Shown here: positions 1 to 31,314 of the stretch, piece by piece
Position numbering within the stretch: position 1 is the stretch's first letter
Layout: each line of letters starts with the position of its first letter
Source: Bugula neritina
Lineage: Eukaryota > Animalia > Bryozoa
NCBI GenBank assembly: GCA_964035545.1
Contig: CAXIUT010000210.1
Location: 1 to 31,314 of the forward strand
Reading direction: 5' to 3'
DNA length: 31,314 nt
Translations under genes and position numbers: made by a program
The notes under the pieces: generated by a model
Told to the model about the DNA's origin: nothing
Database searches by the model: none
What the model saw: the letters and a program-made list of their open reading frames with translations, nothing else

Positions 1-77
1 CCCAACCCCAACCCCAACCCCAACCCCAACCCCAACCCCAACCCCAACCCCAACCCCAACCCCAACCCCAACCCCAA
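1..77 (-). repeat. Left telomere, CCCAA + (CCCCAA)12
   Basis: Perfect C4A2 repeat at the sequence start; the Tetrahymena-type ciliate telomere repeat. Confidence 0.98.
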
Positions 78-14338: not shown

Positions 14339-15661
14339 ATGGCTCTCAGAATCGGTGCTCTCATCCTAGCATCTTGTAATCTTCTCAGTGCAACTGTCCT
14401 TGACTATCATGACTACAAAAACCACCATGGAGCAAAAGGGAAACTCGCTCACGACCACTACGATCATCCTCACCCTCATGGACATAATGCCAAAAACTAT
14501 CACGAACCGCTTCCTAAACTTGGCATTGTCAAGACTAACTATGTCATTGGTGATTCTCCTTATGTTGAACATAAACACCACAATGATGATGATCATCATA
14601 GTCATAGTGGAAGAAGTTGGAGCTCTGATTCAAGCCATTCTCACCATTCTCATCACTCACACTACTTGGCTCATTCACCTGCTCATTCTCATCATTCAGC
14701 TCATTCTCATCACTCTCATCATTCTCATCACTCTCACTCATCTTCCCATTCTCACTCATCTTCTCACTCTCATTCCTCTTCCCACTTCTACTCTCATGTC
14801 AACCTCAACAATAACCCAGTGAAGTTCAAGTCATTAAAATACACTGCCAAAACCAAACAAATTGATGAGAAAGCTCCTATCACTATTGTGAATGTTCCTA
14901 GAATTTCAACTGCTCCTAAGACCAAGCACGTAGTTCCAAAAAATAAAAACATTAACAGATCCAACTTACCTGAATATCGCTACAAGAAAAACATTTCAGC
15001 TAAAAAGGAACTTTATTCTTATGATAACCTATTGAAGACTGCTGTTAGACCAGTCAAGAAAGTTGAAGTTGAGCTTAAGAAGACTAAGATCCGTGATGAA
15101 AAAAGCACTGATTCCAAAAGAGATCACTCTAAAAGTTCATTCTTGAAAAGATATCACTCTGAAAGTTCAAAAGGAGGACACAAATTAATGTACAAAAAAT
15201 ACAAGAGAAGCCACTCTGAAAGTTCAAAAGGACATAAAAGAATGTACAGAAAATATAAGAGAAGTCACTCCAAAGAAAGCAGAAGTTACAGTAGTGATAA
15301 CTACAAAAGAGTTCAGTTGGATAAGCTTGACAGAAAAGTAGCCAAACAGCTTCATATTGGAGATAAAATTGAAAGAATTCCTTTGAAAGTAACTAACTAT
15401 GTTGTTGGAGAAGAACATTCTTCAAGCCACAGTCACAGCTCTAGCCATGGTCATGGACATGGACATGGACATGTTCATGCTATCAAGAAAGTTTACAAAG
15501 GACATCAACACTTCAAGCATGAAGATCATGACTCTCACTCTGACTCAAGCAGTCACCACAGTCATGGACACGGACATAAAGCAGTTTATTTCAAGCCTCC
15601 ATGTGCTAACGTTTATGGATGTGTGAAGAAAGAAGTCAAAGTCTACAAAAACCACCACTGA
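14339..15661 (+). CDS. Secreted His/Ser-rich, Lys-rich repetitive protein, 440 aa
   Basis: Open even in the standard code; signal peptide MALRIGALILASCNLLSA; HSH/SSH/GH repeats; basic repeat KxYKRSHSESSKG; TGA stop. Confidence 0.9.
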   Translation: MALRIGALILASCNLLSATVLDYHDYKNHHGAKGKLAHDHYDHPHPHGHNAKNYHEPLPKLGIVKTNYVIGDSPYVEHKHHNDDDHHSHSGRSWSSDSSHSHHSHHSHYLAHSPAHSHHSAHSHHSHHSHHSHSSSHSHSSSHSHSSSHFYSHVNLNNNPVKFKSLKYTAKTKQIDEKAPITIVNVPRISTAPKTKHVVPKNKNINRSNLPEYRYKKNISAKKELYSYDNLLKTAVRPVKKVEVELKKTKIRDEKSTDSKRDHSKSSFLKRYHSESSKGGHKLMYKKYKRSHSESSKGHKRMYRKYKRSHSKESRSYSSDNYKRVQLDKLDRKVAKQLHIGDKIERIPLKVTNYVVGEEHSSSHSHSSSHGHGHGHGHVHAIKKVYKGHQHFKHEDHDSHSDSSSHHSHGHGHKAVYFKPPCANVYGCVKKEVKVYKNHH

Positions 15662-15740: not shown

Positions 15741-18700
15741 ATGAGTCTTCTAGAGGATAACCAGATAGACTGTTCTGTTTACATTTGTTCATTTCAATGT
15801 TTTATTCGAGAGGCATCAATCAATATGAAGTTTCCCTGTTCTTATTTTGTGGAATGGAGTACTTCTAATAGCAAATCAATGGCAACTACATCTCGATATC
15901 GTCCTTAAAAAAATCAAGTATATATCAACTAAAAGCTAAATCTGACAACTGAGATGATATATGATCATAGTGCATTATAGTTTTCTAAGAAGGAGACTTT
16001 GGTGGAGTTATTTTTGGTAAGCAAAAGTCGTCCAGATCAGAATAAACTTGTCGGAAGGGTAACTATCGATCTTTCAAAGGTCGTAAATGTTTAAATGTAT
16101 GCTTAACCTACATAATTTAAGCTGAGTTTCTGTTCTGTTCATGGAAGTATCACCATGCAATTTATGGTCACAGAACAAAAACTTACCTCTATGAAGGTTC
16201 AAGACCTAGATAGATCATCCTTTATTGACTATATTTCTCAAATAGCTCTTAGACATCAAAAAGGTCAACCAGGAATGAAAGGAGAATCAGGACCTCATAA
16301 GATCTTATCAAATAAAAAATAAATAGATGGAAAAACATCTTTATAGAATGAAATAAAAAATTTACCATAAATAAATAGTCGTCAAGAAAGATCAAAATAT
16401 GCCAGATTGGGTCAAGGATAGCGATCATAACTCAAATAGATTAGTCAAAAGATGATTGGATAATAATAGTAGTAAGTAGTTTTATAGAAACATGTAAATA
16501 CCAATTCTAATAGGATGACTTTTGGAGGTAGAAATGCAGATAATACAATATTAGATAGATAAATCAAGAAAATTGGACTTGTAGATAAAATTAATTTATA
16601 AGAAAAATAAGAAAAATAAGATAAATATCAACATCAGAAGGTTTCTATTGATGTTCAGTTGAGTGAATAAGATAAAATGATGTAAGATGGAGGATTGTTC
16701 AGAAAATTCAAAGAAGATCTAAGAAAAAAGACTGAGCAGTCAGAGTAACCTTTATATATTGACTCAGATAAGGCTATTAAAGATATCAAAGGTATTGATT
16801 AGTTGAAAATTATAAACAATATCAAAGGAACTAGTAGTGATAAATAGATATAAAAAATACAAAAGTAGAATATTCCATTTGATAGTGATAAACCTTTTAA
16901 CAACTAAATACTTGAACAATAAAAGCAGAAATTGTTGGATTTGCAATTGTTATTATAAGAAAAATAACAAAGATAAAAATAAATGAATGAGCTCAATCAG
17001 AAGAATCTATAAGAAATAGATAATCAAGGTGGGTTAATAATTTAGCTATAATGTAAATTGGCTTAGCAGTCTAATAAGGTCTTATAAATGGAGGAATAGT
17101 TTCGGTCAATGGAATAAAAATATTTTAGTTTATTAGAACAACAGAACGAGGGTGAAGTGAAAGAAGGAGATAATTAATAGTTAAAAGCTAAATATTTTAA
17201 TTAAATTAACTAGCTTAATCAATTATTATTAGCAGGAGAACAAAAATAAAGCAAATATCAAACAAAAATAAAAGAACTTGAAGATAAAATTGTTAATCTT
17301 TAAACAAATCAACCCATAACCACTGTGGTTACTAACAATGAAGAAGAAGGGACAGATTTAATTCAAGTTATATCAGAGTTAAAGGGAATGATTGAAGTAT
17401 ACAAGAATAAGGTTGGATAGATGAGTGAGCAAATAAGTAGATTGGAAAGTAACAATCCTAAATAGCTAGAAAGTAACTATTCTAAATAGCTATAAATAAA
17501 GATTTAAGAATTGAGAATTATGACCAATAAATGTGGTGATTTAGACAATCATGTTCAAGCTTTATTGAAACAAAATAACTTTTTCTAAAGACAATTATAA
17601 GATAAAAAATCAGAATATTTGAAACTAACAAATGAACATTAGTATGCTCTTTAATAAATTAAAAATTTACAAATATAGTTGTAAGGTAAAGATCAGGAAT
17701 ATAATATGCTAGTTGCTGAATATTAGAAAGTTCTTGAAGGTAATAATAATAAAGTCTCAGAAGATATTCATGTGATATAGATGGTAGATATTGAAGGAGA
17801 ACAGAGTGATAAGAATATGAAATAGATGGTTTAATAGATATAATTTTTGAAGATGAGTCTGAAGAAGGCTTAACAATTTTCTATTGTAGATAATAAAAGT
17901 GAAGAAATAAATTAGTTATTGGAAGAAATATAATTTTTAAAAGAAAAATTAAATAATAATCCTAGAAATAAGTTTTAATAACTTAATTATGAAGGTTAAA
18001 ATAAAAAATTGTTAGCATAAATATAATTTTTAAAAGAAATACTGAAGAATAATGAATAAATTAATTCTAGACTACTTGAATAAATATAAGAATTGAAACA
18101 AAATCTTCAGAAAAGTTAAAATTTTAAAGAAGAAATAAAACAAAAATAACAATAAAATAGCATGTTGATATCTTAAAAATAATAGCTAAATGCAAAAATT
18201 AACAAACTTGAAACTGAACAAAAAGAGTTGATTAAACCTTAAAAACATAAAGAAATATAAGAATAACTAATAAAAACATCTTCTAAACTAAAAATTTAGG
18301 CAGAACGAGCTAGTACCTTTAATAGTCTTCTTTCTTCATAAAAAGAAAAGAACTCACAGATAAATAATGAAATAAAATAGTTAACTGAAAAAGTTGATAA
18401 CAATCTCAAACATATCCAGCTATTAGAGAATGAAAATAGTAATATTAAAAAGAAAATGGTTGAATATGCCAGTATTCCTTCTTAGTTATCTTCTGCAAAG
18501 GTTGATTAAAGTTAAAGTTGGTAATAAAGAAAGCAAGAATATCAGATGCGGCTGGATAGATTGAATTCTAATTTATAGGATCAGATTAACCAGAATAACT
18601 AACTTTCTTAAACTATCATTAAGTATATGTAGAAAGAAGCCAAGATGAAAGAAACTTTAAATATTTTAGAAGAATAATCTAAGTAGATATTTGTGTTATT

Positions 18701-19715
18701 TAAAGAAAAAGAACATAATGAATCAACTTACCAGAATATGATTGAAAATCTTCAGAAAGAGATGGATCGTTTGAAAACCAACTTTTATTAGATTCATAAT
18801 GAATAGCCATCTCCAATCAAGACTTCACCCAAACAATCCTCACCTAGTGCTGCTCCTGATGATAGAGATGAAACTATTACTCATCTACAGCAAGTCAATT
18901 ATTAGTTACAAGGATAAATACAAGAACTGACGATAAACTTTAATAGTTAAAAGATGTAGTTGGAATAAAAAATATTGAGAATGACTTAAGAATCAGTGGG
19001 AAGGCGAATAGAAGGGTTAGATAGTGGAGTTAAAGAGGAATTGAAGAGCATGCAACTATAGATAGGAATATGGAAATCAAGAAATAAAGATAATTAGTAA
19101 GGTCGTTTGAGGTTATAGAAAGAGTTGTTAGAGGTACAAAATTATATATAGTTAATGTAGTAATAGAAATTTGGTCTACAATCAACAAATAACGAAAAAG
19201 ACATAAAAATAATCTAACTATAGAAAGAGATGTTTAATTTATTGACTCAAATTGAATCGTTGTCGGCTTCTCCTTACTAGATAAAAATAACAACAGTATA
19301 ATCAGTTGATTCAATCGAATAGTAGCAACTTCAATCTTAACCTTAACATCTTATTTCTTAGCCACAACATTTAGTTTCTTCTGTAAATCCATCATAGTTA
19401 TCAGAATGTTTTTTATAATTAAAAAATCAGATGACAAGTCGAACAGTTAGTTCTGATTGGTAAATATTGATAAAAAATGTTCTTGATCGAAGTTTAGGAG
19501 GATAGTAAGCATCAAAATTGATAAATATCTAGTAGAAAAGTCGTTTATTATCAAAGTAGATGCAGAAGTTGAAATCTCAGTTATTGAAGAGTTCATCTAA
19601 AAATCAACAATAGAAATTGAGTTTTATGAATTTAGTTAAACGTTGTGAATCAATAATACCTTAAATAATATCAGCAGTATAATCTTTGAACCTGAATCAG
19701 AGTTCATTTTTATGA
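15741..19715 (+). CDS. NT-C2 (EEIG1/EHBP1-type) domain plus long coiled coil, 1324 aa
   Basis: 3975-nt TGA-free frame; N-terminus FVEW..IN-E-KLNLTTEMIYD..FSKKETLVELFLV..KLVGRVTIDLSKVV resembles NT-C2; the remainder is E/K/Q/L heptad-rich. Confidence 0.8.
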
Positions 19716-19762
19716 TATCAAACATAATTATTAATATCACTATAATTAGAAATATATCAACA

Positions 19763-20158: not shown

Positions 20159-20369
20159 TCAATTTATCTTATTTTAAAATTATTTGATATTAAGTTTTAA
20201 TTTATTTGTTTGATAAAATAAAATACATAGGAACAAATTCACTGATCATTTGTTAGTAGTTTCTATTTTTTTGAATATAATGACTAAAATATTGAATAAT
20301 TGATATCTATTCTATATATATATGGCATATATGGTATTGAATGCTTCGGTTATTCAGAATTGATTAAAT

Positions 20370-21764
20370 ATGAATCAACAAAACCCTATAATTCCTGTCT
20401 CTATCTCTAAAACTCCCATCATTCCCATCATTAGCTATCCTGAAGTAGTTCCTTAAGTTTAACATGTTATAAAACCTGATCCCATCATTAAACAATAACA
20501 ATAATTGGCAATATTATAGTAATAACCGAAAATCAAATAATCTACTCTAGCTACTCCTAAAGCCAAAAAGATTAAAGAAGAGTCAATGTCTATTGACTGT
20601 GAAGGTTAAATAGTGAGGATAACAGGCAAAAGAGCACCATATAAAAAAGATAGGAAGGTTAGGACTCTGATTACCAAGGAGAAGTTGCTATAGATGAACA
20701 GAATATTTTCTGAATATATCAACACTAAGTAAAATACATAAGAAGGTCAAGAAGGTGAGTAGATTCCTGTCCAAGATGAGGAACAATAAGTCAAATGTGT
20801 CTGGAATCTAAGAATGATAGCTAAAAATTTAGATTTGGGGTATTCAACTATCTTACATAAATTTAGATAATTTCGAGCCAACAAGAAGGTGCGAGCGGGT
20901 GCTTTGATAACATCTATGCAAAAAAAACGTAAATACAAGAAATCGTTGTTGGTTTAAAAATTGATTTCTGAAGTAATGAGTGAACGTTAGTTTTTTACTG
21001 CCTGCTAGATGAATAAATATATCCAAGAAAAATATGGAAAGACGTTTTCAAGGTCAATTATCAGTCGGCATTTGGGTTAAATGGGATATAGCTATCGAAA
21101 TGTGAGTGCGCCTACTGAAACCAGAGAGAAAAAGTTTGATAAAGTCAGAAGGGAGTATGTCGAAGTGATGCAACCTTTGCTAGAACAGGAAAGGACACTT
21201 ATTTTTATTGATTAGATGAGTTGTTGTCTGTAGAAACCAAGAGACTAAGGAGAAGAAAGAATCGATTAATAAGTTCCTACTGTATCAGTACTAGTAGCTT
21301 GCACTGTTTATGGAGTTTTGTACTTCCATATTCAAGATGGATTCATCACAAGAAACAGTTTTTATTCAATATTGAAGGAGTTTTTGAGTAATCTTCGTGC
21401 AAGTCCTCTTTGTTCTAACATTCAAGGTCCTAAAGAGGAACTATATTTGGTTGTAGACATGAATTCTATTCATAGAGATAGTGATACTAACTATCCTGGA
21501 ATATCTACTATGTTGATTGAAGATAATGCAGAAATTTATTATATTCCTCCCTGTTCACCTGAGTTCAATCCTTTGTAACCTTTATTTTTGAAGATAAGGG
21601 AATAATTAGAGTAAAAAGTAGGAAAATAGAAAGAGATTGATTCAAGGATTTTGTGGGATAAGTTAGAGGAGATAATGGAGAGAGTTAAAAAGGAACCAAC
21701 TGATGACTATTTTTATGATATGTGCCAAGAAATGGAAAGATATGCAGATTGCATCTTAAAGTGA
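20370..21764 (+). CDS. IS630/Tc1/mariner-family (DDE_3-like) transposase, DD39E, 464 aa; no terminal inverted repeats seen
   Basis: HTH LRMIAKNLDLGYSTILHKF; second HTH FTACEMNKYIQEKYGKTFSRSIISRHLGEMGYSYR; LIFID-E (D at 21210), LVVDMNSIH (D at 21456), YIPPCSPEFNPL-E (E = TAA at 21576-21578). Confidence 0.88.
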
Positions 21765-21839
21765 TAAATAGTTATTATTAATGATGATATGTTATTATAA
21801 AATGCTTATGTAGAAAAAAATTATTACAATTACATTTAT

Positions 21840-23407
21840 TCATAATTATCTTAATAATCTCTTGAAAATCATTGTTCAATCTTAATTATAATATTTCAAA
21901 TTCTTCTTCTTCTTCTTCTCATCTAAGAAAATTATCTGTGTCTTTAATTTTAAGTTTCTTAGCACTAACAACATAGATTTGCTGCTGAGAACTTATTTTT
22001 TTAACTAACTGCAGATTCTAAAAGTTCAGAAACATTTTTACTATAATTGATTTAAAGAGCTTTTTTATAATATATGATTGCATCTTATATTTTATTCTTT
22101 TTCTAAAGTGCTAATCCTAAGTTTTTATATTGATTTGAAGAGTTTGGATATATTTAAATTGCTTTTTATAAACACTTGATTCCATCATCTATTTTATCTA
22201 TTTTGATATAAACTTTTCCTAAGGTATTGTAACTAGTCCAACTATTTTGCTATATTTAAATAGATTTTTAATAACATTTGATTGCCTCTTCATATTTATT
22301 TATCGACTAAAGTGATTTTCCTAAAGAATAATAGACTTTCCAATCATTTTAGTTGAGTTAAAAAGCCTTTTAAATTCTATGTTTTTCTTTTTAATTTATA
22401 TTGTATTTTAAATATTATTTAAATTATATTGACTTCATTGAATTTTAATTTTTCTGATATATAACTTTTAATTTCTTTGTTTTATTTTACTATTTACTAT
22501 TTTTAATATAATTTTGAGTTTATTCTTTAAATTCAATATTTTATCTTTATATTTCAAACATTTATGCTCCAAGTTTTATAGTTTAATTCTCTAATTAAGT
22601 AACTAACTAAGGAGTGATGACTCTTCCTGCATTTCCTTCGATTCCATCTTATTTTATTCCTCCTTTGTGAATTCCAATAATAGAAAGTTTACAATTTTAA
22701 CTAATTCCTATAAGTGGAGCACCACTTTGACCTTGTTAAGTTGATATCTGATGGATTATTTTCCAATTTTAATTATTTTTGCTGGAAATAATTTTTCCTT
22801 TTCGAATCAACCCATGTTGTTCTACAGATAAGACTTCCTATTCTGGACTGATTGGTTGATATTTATCTTAGGGATATCCAAAAATACCAATCTTTAATTG
22901 ATTATTAATCTTAGTAGTATCATAATTCAGAGGGATAAAATTTAGATTTGGAGTATTTAATTTTAGTTTTAAGAGTGCATAATCATATAAGCAACTATTC
23001 TTCCAAGTTTGAAATTACAAAGGTATAAAAAATGACTCTACTTAATAAAAAGACTCAAAAATACCTGAATGTCCTGGATAAAATTTGAAATCATTATTAA
23101 ATAAAGATGTATCTTTATTATATATGTTATGAGCACAAGTCAAAACAAGGTTTGGTGAGATAAGTATCCCAGTACCATGTAGAAGTTTTCTTTTTATTTT
23201 AGGTTTTCTTTTAATTATAGTTATGCAAGTTAAAACACCTATGTGTCGATGTAGTTGTTTGTTCATTTCATCAGGTTTTACAGGATAGAGATTCTATCCA
23301 GGAAAACATTTCTAATCTTCTAGGTAGATAGATTCTTATATGAGATTATTCTATCCATCTAAATCTTTGTTTTAGATTATTTGTATATTTTTTTAGATGT
23401 TTCCCAT
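21840..23407 (-). CDS. Trypsin-like (V8/S1B-type) serine protease fused to C-terminal TPR repeats (3' end approximate)
   Basis: GTGILISPNLVLTCAHN (His), YDYALLKL (Asp), GYP, HQISTEQGQSGAPL (Ser), IIGIHKGG; then TPRs such as YYSLGKSLESINKYEEAIKCYEKSIEI and YNTLGKVYIKIDKIDDGIKCLEKAIEIYP. A few indels in the TPR region. Confidence 0.85.
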
Positions 23408-23584
23408 TTTTGTACTTTTTATTTGATATTTTAAAAGATGTTAAATTATTATATATCAATCTTGATTTTTGAAATAATTTAGCAAAATTATCTTTATCAT
23501 AAGAAATTTATTTATTAATATTGATAATCATTCTTAAAATTTAGCTGTTTTATATTTAATAATCAACATCTTTATCTTATTTCA

Positions 23585-27066: not shown

Positions 27067-27137
27067 TTGGGGTTGGGGTTGGGGTTGGGGTTGGGGTTGG
27101 GGTTGGGGTTGGGGTTGGGGTTGGGGTTGGGGTTGGG
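27067..27137 (+). repeat. Internal telomere tract (TTGGGG)11 + TTGGG in right-end orientation
   Basis: Perfect repeat, preceded by a 73-nt AT-rich spacer after a stop codon and followed directly by coding sequence. Confidence 0.97.
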
Positions 27138-30100
27138 ACGATCTAACCTGAAGTAGTACAGTTCGGAAGAGATGCTTCTCAAACTATCAAAATCATTAAT
27201 AATACTTCTTAAAAGATAACCAACTTCTTCTTTTGTCTTTTCAATCAATAAAAGTTTACATTTACTCCTTAATCATTTTCATTAGCACCCAACTAACATA
27301 AACTAATCGCCATTACATTCAAAATAAAATCATCAAAATCAATAGCTAAAGAATTTGCCTACCTTAAATCAACCTAAATCAATAAAAGAATTACTCTATT
27401 GATTAATCAGTTCCAATCTCCTGATGTTAGACATCGACCAATTGAAGAAGGAGTAGAAGATCTCAATACTTTAAGTTCAAGGGAGTACAAAGATATGCAG
27501 ACTGATGCTATTGAGAAGATGATTAGGTAGAAAGAAGCATATATTGCTATGTTGGAAAAAGAGAGGGAAGGAGTAAATCGAAGTCTTAATTTTAAAACTG
27601 AAGAAAGCGCATAAAAAACTTAAAAAATAAAACGTTAGTTTCAATAAGTTGAGATGAAATTGCTGATGGCATAGAATTAAAAACAAAGTTTGATGAAGGA
27701 AAATATGGCTCTTCAAAGTAAGTTCTAAGAATATAAAAAATTTTGCTAATCTGATCTAAAAAACTATGAGAAGATAAGTCATGATTATCGTTAGAAGTTA
27801 GAGTAAACTGCAAAGATGCAATAAGAAATAAACTACCTTTAACAACAGGGAAATCAATTTCTATCAAAAATTGAGTAGAAATAACAAAAGATAAAGGAAC
27901 TATAGCAGACGAATAGGAGAAGTATTGAAGATGCTAAAAAATAGACAGAAAAGAAATATGGATATATGTAGGAAAGGTTACAGGAACAGAAGAATATGCA
28001 TCAACAGTCATTGGCTTATGCAGAGGAAAGGATTAAGTAGTTAGAGAAACAATTAGATAATAGTAATTCTTCTAAATAGAAGACTCAATATTTTTAGAAT
28101 TAGTTAAAAAAGAGAGAATAAGAATTGAAAAAGATTATGGAGGCTTTTTAGAGTTAGAGAAGTAGTAATAAATCTTTATAAGCTGAAAGAAAAGATTGAT
28201 GAAGATCTAGCTATCTAATTAAAGTATATCTTAAAGAAATAACTAACTGACATCAAGATTGAAAGAAATGGAGAAAGTCAATCATAATTTGAAGGAAGAA
28301 ATGTATGTATTAAAATCTAAAAGAGTAGAAAAAGATTAATCTTCAGATAAAATGAATCAATATCTAGAGATAGCTCTTGAAAGTTGTAAAAATTAAAATG
28401 ATGCTTTGAAAAGAACCAAAAATTAACTATAAAAGTCATTGGATGAGTTCATGCTAATGAACAGACAGAGTCATGATAATAATAAAACTATGGGAGAGCA
28501 GGTGGTTAAATACAAGGAAGAAGTAGGATTACTTTTAGAGATAAGAGATAATTTATAAAGAAGAAATTAATAAACCAAACAAGAACATCATCTTGCTATC
28601 ATGCAACTTAAAACAGAGAACATCTAGTTGTTAGAGAAATTATCTCTAGGAGAGGCGAGTAAACGTGATGGAAAAATAGGAAAACTAGAAGACTAGATTG
28701 TTGTCTTGAGGAGAGAGTTGGCCAAGGTGACTGTTGATTTGGAAGAGCAAATAGTTAAAAATGAAGAAATGTTGGTTGATAACACCAAGTTGAATTAGAA
28801 AGTGAAGAAATACAAGAAAGATGCTAAGAAGGAATTGAAAAATATTAACGATACTGCTATTAATCAATTACAAAAGGAACATGAATAGAAGAAAACAATG
28901 GCTAGGAGAATAACTCAGCTATAAGAAGTAATCATTAACACTAATTGTGAAAAAGTACAAGATGAAAAAGATATGAATGCTAGAGAGACTAATGCCAGAT
29001 TAAGATTTGAGACAGAAGGAGAGATGAAGAAATAAAGAACTTCTACTCAAGTACTTGGTATTAGAAATCAAAGAAAGGAAATTCAATATTCTCAAGTTTC
29101 TTCTAATAATGATATACATGCTTAACTAGGATAACTCAGAGAGATCAGTAATTTTATTAGAAATGAGGAAGATCGCTTCAATAGATTATATTAACTAAAT
29201 AATTCTCATGAATAAGTTGAATAGAAGTATGAGCCAAGAGCAGTTATAAAGGTGATAAACTTTTTCAAGAGATTGTAGGGTAAATTGGAACAAGGCAGGA
29301 CTTCAGCAAATATTGATCATGTGAAGTAACTTTAATATTTGAAGGGCAGAATCCGTGAGTTGTAAAATGTAAAGGAAGATAAATAGAATATGTCATCAAT
29401 CAATTTGAGTAAAACTAGATAACACTGCAGTGAGTTGTTAGATTTTGTTCGTGAGTAGATGAAAAATCAATATAAAAAATTGAATTAAACAATTAAGCTA
29501 TCAGAACAAAAACATTAACTCTTAAAGAAGAAAATTTATTAAGAATATAGATCTCGTATTATTGATGCTCTCAACAAAAAAGATAAGAATACTATTGGAC
29601 AATTATAAAGTTTGTTGGAGCGATTTGTTGATGGAATGAGTAATTTGAGTCACAAAGAGGCTGTACTACATAAATAAATCAAGTTAAAACAAAATGCAAG
29701 AAAAAAAAATGCTGAATTAAAGGAGAAAGTTAATGAATTAAACTATCTATTACAAAAAAAGGGACATTGTTCAAGGGATCCAATCAAGTTGGTCTATAAT
29801 TAGACTTAAATATAGTGGCAAGAAAGTTTAAAGAGATAGGCTGAACATTTAACTTTGACTGCTGAACATCAAAGAATCAAAGAAGAGTTAGAATTGGTTT
29901 AGACTTAGTTGGCTGATCTAAGAGATGAATTTAAAATATTGGAAAAACAGTTAGATGATAAATCAGATGAAGTACTAAAGTTGAAAAGGTATCAGATAGA
30001 TATTCAAACTAACTATGATAAATAACTTCAGAAACAGTATGAAATAATGGAATAAAATAAAAAGAAAATAATGGAGATGACAAAAAATAGTAAAGAAGTT

Positions 30101-31134: not shown

Positions 31135-31238
31135 TTTTATGACTTTGTTTTAAAAATCTATTATTTTATTACGAGAATTTAATCAAGAGCTAAATCTATG
31201 ATTAATATATGTTTGAGTAATAAGTATTAATTATCAAA

Positions 31239-31314
31239 TGGGGTTGGGGTTGGGGTTGGGGTTGGGGTTGGGGTTGGGGTTGGGGTTGGGGTTGGGGTTG
31301 GGGTTGGGGTTGGG
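31239..31314 (+). repeat. Right telomere TGGGG(TTGGGG)11TTGGG
   Basis: Perfect T2G4 repeat at the sequence end, 104 nt after the RPB10 stop. Confidence 0.98.

Follow-up and report, generated by a model that had tools for sequence, protein, structure and literature searches.

A probable domesticated IS630/Tc1-type transposase gene on a somatic chromosome of a ciliate that reads TAA and TAG as glutamate

A transposase-like frame lies at positions 20370-21764 of the stretch of DNA analysed here (31,314 nt, hereafter the window). Such a locus raises the question of whether the frame belongs to a mobile element or to its host and, if to the host, what its product would do there. The initial annotation had read it as a candidate domesticated IS630/Tc1-type transposase on a somatic chromosome, and this reading was upheld by the telomeres of the window, the lack of flanking inverted repeats, the synteny of the orthologs, a dN/dS of 0.12 and the mariner/Tc1-like fold predicted for the core. 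Very probably, this is an immobile and vertically inherited host gene that descends from a cut-and-paste enzyme of the IS630/Tc1 type (DDE_3), carried in the macronucleus of a ciliate in which UAR codons (TAA and TAG) encode Glu.

Chromosomal Context

Telomere-type repeats were found at three places in the window:

1..77 (+), C4A2 telomere repeats, left end
27067..27138 (+), internal G4T2 telomere-type tract of about 12 repeats, at which a gene-bearing telomere-to-telomere unit of 27.1 kb has its right end
31238..31314 (+), G4T2 telomere repeats, right end of the window

Since C4A2 or G4T2 repeats cap both ends of the window, the gene lies on a telomere-capped macronuclear chromosome, as had been supposed. 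Unrelated coding sequence was observed beyond the internal tract (27067-27138). The window is either a 27.1-kb gene-bearing chromosome to which a 4.2-kb piece was joined by the assembly, or a chromosome with an alternative site of fragmentation and telomere addition.

The rest of the window consisted of dense TGA-terminated frames. The neighbours of the gene had been described as ordinary genes, and they proved to be so: pieces of the neighbouring frames matched the Pfam families EXS, Kelch and ubiquitin hydrolase (UCH) and, weakly, trypsin-like peptidase. The translation of the trypsin-like frame (21896-23407, minus strand) also contained TPR-like repeats. In contigs of two sequencing runs with the same species label, position 21783 was joined to 23480 or 23515, with about 1.7 kb skipped and other letters possibly in between. 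Given this joint over 21783-23515, a variant haplotype or strain seems to lack the trypsin-TPR gene or to carry other sequence in its place.

Two long frames were observed upstream. The frame at 14339-15661 (+) has 440 codons, is rich in His and Ser, contains no TAA or TAG, against a UAR share of about 3-10% in the other long frames, and had no Pfam match. The frame at 15741-19715 (+) has 1324 codons, is coiled-coil-like and makes extreme use of TAA/TAG (136 codons, about 10%). In each of two runs, two variants of 20179-20417, which covers upstream spacer together with the start of the gene, were present side by side. One of them had 16 gap positions, which points to differences between alleles or strains in the non-coding leader.

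Open Reading Frame and Pfam Assignment

The gene was delimited as follows:

20370..21764 (+), transposase-derived host gene, 464 codons and a TGA stop; 28 of the sense codons are TAA/TAG (Glu)

The frame had been claimed to be intact, and it runs through 464 codons to its terminal TGA with no in-frame TGA and 28 in-frame TAA/TAG codons. TGA makes up about 2.7% of codons (2.4-3.2% across the + strand frames of the window), and at the frequency of the window the probability that 464 codons lack TGA by chance was about 3e-6. The spacers beside the gene measured 654 nt upstream and 131 nt downstream; the initial annotation had called the spacers short, which does not fit the upstream one.

For the profile searches, the stretches between the UAR codons of the gene were taken one by one, with translation by the bacterial code. 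The profile search that had been proposed assigned the piece at 21273-21575 (101 aa) to Pfam DDE_3 (PF13358) with 33.1 bits (E 6e-8), above the cut-off of 28.6.

Relatives of the Protein

A word-index search with the 101-residue piece returned one protein, P0001 (170 aa, 71% identical), which also matched DDE_3 above the cut-off (34.2 bits); this search, over 90% clusters, was limited by its length filter and by UAR-broken gene calls in public data. The contigs that carry P0001, L001 and L002, came from a metagenome and had 45% G+C. They contained a TGA-free, full-length counterpart of 446 codons that aligned end to end with the window protein.

An exhaustive HMMER search with P0001 against 1.84 billion representatives gave only 22 hits at E <= 1e-3. 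Most of these were fragments of 55-170 residues, as is expected where UAR codons break genes in standard gene calls. Conventional IS630-like proteins with the DN motif (P0019 and P0021) reached only E values around 1e-4 to 1e-5.

Further full-length counterparts were found on L003 (44% G+C) and on L006, L007 and L008 (43-46% G+C). L004 (60% G+C) carried a more distant relative, and L005 a fragment of a second subfamily. The suggested ortholog search therefore yielded full-length orthologs in three other organisms with UAR as sense and TGA as stop. Their proteins were 52-54% identical in amino acids to the window protein, and those of the L001, L003 and L006 organisms were 62-84% identical to one another.

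NF033545 (IS630) was the sole NCBIfam match, and its alignment spanned the helix-turn-helix (HTH) and catalytic parts. The pieces scored 34.7, 21.8 and 14.7 bits and the near-full-length P0020 (290 aa) scored 65.4, all under the cut-off of 100, in part for the technical reason that the pieces are shorter than the model. The cut-off was passed by the distant hits P0021 and P0025, the latter a cluster-mate of P0019. Judged from the sequences recovered, the family is small, divergent and confined to UAR-sense, TGA-stop organisms.

Catalytic Domain and Predicted Fold

The catalytic part and its three acidic residues were located as follows:

21081..21761 (+), catalytic DDE_3 (RNase H-like) domain and C-terminal helices, from the Pfam DDE_3 match and the ortholog core model
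21210..21212 (+), D281 (GAT), first catalytic Asp; the next residue is a Glu with the codon TAG ('DE' motif)
21456..21458 (+), D363 (GAC), second catalytic Asp; the next residue is Met in place of the usual Asn
21576..21578 (+), catalytic Glu, E403, codon TAA (GAR Glu in L001 and L003, UAR in L006)

The first and second Asp are separated by 81 residues, and the second Asp and the Glu by 39. The latter spacing had been noted from the sequence; it was recovered with D281, D363 and E403, and the L001 ortholog likewise has 39 residues there. The alignment showed that D, D and E were kept in the four orthologs and in most family fragments. The catalytic acids and the motifs around them were invariant in the four orthologs despite saturated synonymous divergence.

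Replacement of DN by DM, also noted at first, was found in the relatives as well: the residue after the second Asp is Met in the window, in the three syntenic orthologs and in the majority of the recovered fragments of the family. This Met and the DD39E spacing characterise the family. Provided that UAR encodes Glu, the window protein has a complete D-D-E triad.

Sequence comparison of the 101-aa core with PDB chains gave a chance match alone, and fold comparison was used instead. The core of P0001, an ortholog 71% identical to the window piece and used as model input in place of the window protein itself, was modelled by AF2 with the family alignment (pLDDT 87.7, pTM 0.81). The elements of the model followed the order b1-b2-b3-a-b4-a-b5-a, which is RNase H-like. 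In this structure prediction, which the initial annotation had proposed for the active site, the three acids of the ortholog fell in the expected RNase H-like elements: D44 in the strand 40-51, D119 just behind the strand 114-118, and E159 where the helix 159-169 begins. The best PDB matches of the model in Foldseek were the catalytic domains of Mos1, Metnase/SETMAR and Sleeping Beauty, with TMq of 0.52-0.67 and a sequence identity of only 13-18%. The predicted fold of the ortholog core is mariner/Tc1-like.

Reading of UAR Codons

The triad depends on how the TAA codon of E403 is read. Across the ortholog pairs, UAR codons were mostly opposite Glu; between the window and L003, they were opposite Glu 17 times and opposite Gln twice. 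In the columns where the three orthologs agreed, window UAR codons were opposite Glu (or UAR) seven times and opposite Gln twice. At the Glu after the first Asp and again at the catalytic Glu, the window has UAR where L001 and L003 have GAR. This agrees with the earlier claim that the gene uses UAR for Glu even at the catalytic position, where E403 is TAA and two orthologs have GAA or GAG.

The same exchange was found at short range. L006 and L008 differ at 36 of 1350 bases, and from L006 to L008 codon 382 changes from TAA to GAG and the catalytic Glu codon, 387, from TAA to GAA. Such a swap of TAA for GAA at the catalytic codon of two near-identical sequences supports the reading of UAR as Glu and an intact triad. 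In addition, the TPR repeats of the neighbour gene carry UAR at positions which we take to be Glu in the TPR consensus.

If UAR were Gln here, the protein would be D-D-Q and a catalytically dead relic or pseudo-enzyme. The two conserved columns in which window UAR is opposite Gln in all three orthologs point that way, as do TAA/CAA changes at two N-terminal codons among the listed strain variants. However, Glu dominates over all pairs and by seven to two in the agreed columns, two codons, the catalytic one among them, are TAA in one of two near-identical strains and GAA or GAG in the other, and the UAR positions in the TPR repeats also speak for Glu; a D-D-Q protein is very unlikely. The ciliate of the window has a peritrich-type code (TAA/TAG = Glu). 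Because the catalytic Glu is written TAA or GAA interchangeably in close strains, the gene offers a natural and clean check on the reading of UAR as Glu.

Host Gene or Mobile Element

Flanking inverted repeats had been reported as absent by eye. A repeat search of the flanks at four loci, namely the window, L001, L003 and L006, gave only background-level, AT-rich pairs and no inverted repeats above the AT-rich background. The best flanking pair, 19727-19748 and 21837-21858 (22 nt, 77%), was considered as element ends and dropped, since nothing comparable was found at the orthologous loci. At the related loci, the spacers between the gene and its neighbours ranged from tens of bases to about 110 (about 35-110 nt).

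No second copy of the gene was found in the window. Two runs that bear the same species label gave contigs in which the gene was present at 95-97% identity and contiguous with its upstream flank, and contig depth, which is a rough guide, was about the same over the gene as over the flanks. These observations suggest one copy of the gene at the same place in the sequenced strains.

The order Polo kinase, Ser-rich gene (opposite strand), transposase gene, LRR-H2A gene was common to L001/L002 and L003, and the upstream part of this order was also present in L006 and L008. The synteny comparison that had been proposed therefore revealed a conserved neighbourhood among L001/L002 and L003, shared in part by L006 and L008, with the window copy outside the block; between the window and L001, L002 or L003, no synteny was found beyond the gene itself. 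The window gene may be a moved ortholog or, as its position outside the block of L001, L003 and L006 allows, a paralog of the genes there. In the LRR-H2A frames (L001:5252-6343 and L003:4666-6000), a leucine-rich-repeat region was seen to be fused in frame to a histone H2A-like C-terminal part; the L001 and L003 frames are 89% identical.

Selection was estimated by the Nei-Gojobori method with the peritrich code. Between the window and its orthologs, synonymous sites were saturated (pS 0.92-0.94), with 52-54% of residues kept overall and 71% in the core, and closer ortholog pairs were therefore used for dN/dS. The L001 and L006 genes gave a dN of 0.089 and a dS of 0.72, that is, a dN/dS of 0.12 (Fisher p 9e-46 against equal rates), far below the value near 1 that the initial annotation had named as contrary evidence. 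By region, dN/dS for this pair was 0.43 in the N-terminus, 0.04 in the DNA-binding region and 0.11 in the catalytic region. L006 and L008 differed by 26 synonymous and 8 non-synonymous changes. At least 19 strain changes were listed for the window gene; those in conserved parts of the protein were synonymous, and most of those in the acidic insert replaced a residue. These comparisons indicate strong purifying selection on the gene, strongest in the DNA-binding region.

A Tc1/IS630 element that is still mobile, or was until recently, and that avoided elimination and persists in the macronucleus would also present an intact frame with a full triad, and one of its ends could lie undetected in the 654 nt of spacer upstream. 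Against this, no inverted repeats were found here or at three orthologous loci whose spacers measure about 35-110 nt, synteny has been kept across organisms whose proteins are 62-84% identical, and the interspecies dN/dS is 0.12. Contig depth close to that of the flanks and a single related cluster at 90% clustering also argue against mobility, and we regard a mobile element as highly improbable. The gene is better read as a domesticated host gene.

DNA-binding Region and Possible Function

The part of the protein before the catalytic domain was divided as follows:

20370..20651 (+), N-terminal extension, Pro-rich and poorly conserved (residues 1-94), from the alignment of orthologs
20652..21089 (+), DNA-binding region (residues about 95-240), from weak HTH_33/HTH_32 matches, the AF2 model and a dN/dS of 0.04
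20751..20798 (+), acidic 16-residue insert (residues 128-143), specific to the window organism, from the alignment

The N-terminal extension had been described as rich in Pro and Glu. Its proline content was apparent, and it is otherwise better called Pro/Ile-rich, with a Glu content that depends on the reading of UAR. The acidic insert noted before the first HTH was found as 16 residues at 128-143, which in the alignment are missing from L001, L003, L006 and L004. The strain differences listed for the gene concentrate at 20757-20798, inside this insert.

The DNA-binding region consists, in order, of a conserved basic motif, HTH unit 1, a basic linker and HTH unit 2. HTH_33 matched the window piece 21009-21077 with E 0.023 and HTH_32 matched the ortholog with E 9e-4, both below the cut-off. 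For the L006 protein, an AF2 model of its N-terminal 138 residues (pLDDT 76) predicted two three-helix units and a basic joining segment, and Foldseek with this model gave weak homeodomain-like matches (E 0.2-0.7), in keeping with the HTH_32 match below its cut-off. The two HTH regions proposed at first are therefore putative, with two three-helix units in the ortholog model and family matches that are weak and sub-threshold.

On the 60% G+C contig, the distant relative (L004:611-1624) was seen to have a nearly identical HTH region, together with changes around the active site: His after the first Asp, Ile-Lys after the second Asp, and Asn-Phe for Asn-Pro before the Glu. Judged by these residues, it possibly represents a non-catalytic paralog line.

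The protein appears to keep the ancestral layout, in which the N-terminal two-unit HTH region would bind specific DNA and the RNase H-like core behind it would cut or join DNA with two metal ions. On the basis of the conserved triad, the protein is probably a sequence-directed, Mg2+-dependent DNA endonuclease or strand-transferase. In the developing new macronucleus, it would cut or mark DNA that is limited to the germline, acting as an excisase itself or alongside one. By analogy with the genes compared below, a part in new-macronucleus development or programmed DNA elimination is the likeliest job, and it is put forward tentatively. None of the listed sequencing runs in which the gene was found is catalogued as RNA, and almost none of the gene's words occurred in small runs, possibly of RNA, under the same species label.

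The most constrained part of the gene is the DNA-binding region (dN/dS 0.04 against 0.11 for the catalytic region, L001 against L006). This stronger constraint, together with the degraded active site in L004, suggests that the conserved core function may be DNA binding. Both observations also favour a domesticated DNA-binding factor that uses the HTH units without cutting DNA. Such a protein could act as a regulator, associate with chromatin or telomeres or, itself non-catalytic, assist or compete with another excisase, and its triad would have been retained to bind metal or DNA or to support the structure. However, the three acids and their motifs are invariant in four orthologs across saturating divergence, and the catalytic domain is itself strongly constrained (0.11). 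A non-cutting factor is accordingly rather unlikely, and an active nuclease or strand-transferase remains the preferred reading.

The class Oligohymenophorea includes Paramecium and Tetrahymena, the main excisases of both of which are PiggyBac-derived, and for this reason the window protein need not be the excisase. Peritrichs are placed in the Oligohymenophorea in the title of PMC12411067. A more specific scheme, drawn by analogy, would make the DD39E protein the catalytic subunit of a Tc1/IS630-derived DNA-elimination machine in peritrich-code ciliates, with L004-type degenerate relatives as non-catalytic partners, as PgmL proteins are for PiggyMac. We consider this scheme doubtful. If true, it would mean the independent recruitment of a second transposase superfamily as an excisase encoded in the somatic genome, in the class of Paramecium and Tetrahymena.

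Comparison with Known Transposase-derived Genes

The closest described case is that of the somatic DDE_3 genes of Blepharisma. Six such genes without terminal repeats have been reported, five of the six with full triads, and all were up-regulated during formation of the new macronucleus (PMC9942806 and preprint 10.1101/2021.12.14.471607). Like these 'additional domesticated transposases' of Blepharisma stoltei, the window gene is somatic, matches Pfam DDE_3, has no flanking terminal repeats and belongs to a set with mostly complete triads. In both cases the genes are nearer to IS630 than to classic Tc1, and for both a role in DNA elimination may be suspected. Unlike Blepharisma, the window represents another ciliate lineage with another genetic code. 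The two families are distinct, since no full-length annotated protein was among the 22 hits (E <= 1e-3). For the window family, orthology, synteny and dN/dS were shown, whereas developmental expression was shown for Blepharisma.

The TBE transposases of Oxytricha, for which a part in IES excision has been proposed (PMC9942806 and preprint), and the Tec transposases of Euplotes belong to the same Tc1/IS630 superfamily and share Pfam DDE_3 with the window gene. TBE and Tec genes lie inside multi-copy, germline-limited transposons with element ends. In contrast, the window gene appears to be single-copy, is somatic and has no repeats, and its orthologs are syntenic across species.

With PiggyMac of Paramecium and Tpb2 of Tetrahymena, the protein shares a somatic, immobile and transposase-derived nature and the retention of the catalytic acids, and the degenerate relative on L004 recalls Pgm with its PgmL partners. 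PiggyMac and Tpb2 come from an unrelated DDE superfamily (PiggyBac, DDD), and their role has been proven by knockdown, whereas that of the window gene is proposed by analogy.

SETMAR/Metnase and Mos1 were the best structural matches to the predicted core, and SETMAR is likewise a domesticated mariner. They are DD34D or DDN as compared with DD39E, and the window gene has no SET fusion and a different N-terminal region. Compared with the IS630 family (NF033545), the protein scored far below the cut-off and the gene lacks element ends. The gene is most suitably placed among the already described somatic transposase-derived genes of ciliates, as a new member restricted to its lineage.

The literature search found no description of excision machinery or of germline genomes for peritrich-code ciliates, and the papers on peritrich genomes did not mention transposases. 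With its apparently intact active site, constrained DNA-binding domain and comparable orthologs, the gene is a concrete excision candidate for these ciliates. If it has no part in DNA elimination, it would be one more in the growing set of somatic transposase-derived ciliate genes. If it does take part, somatic host genes for this task would have been drawn from Tc1/IS630-type enzymes, in addition to PiggyBac-derived ones or in their place.
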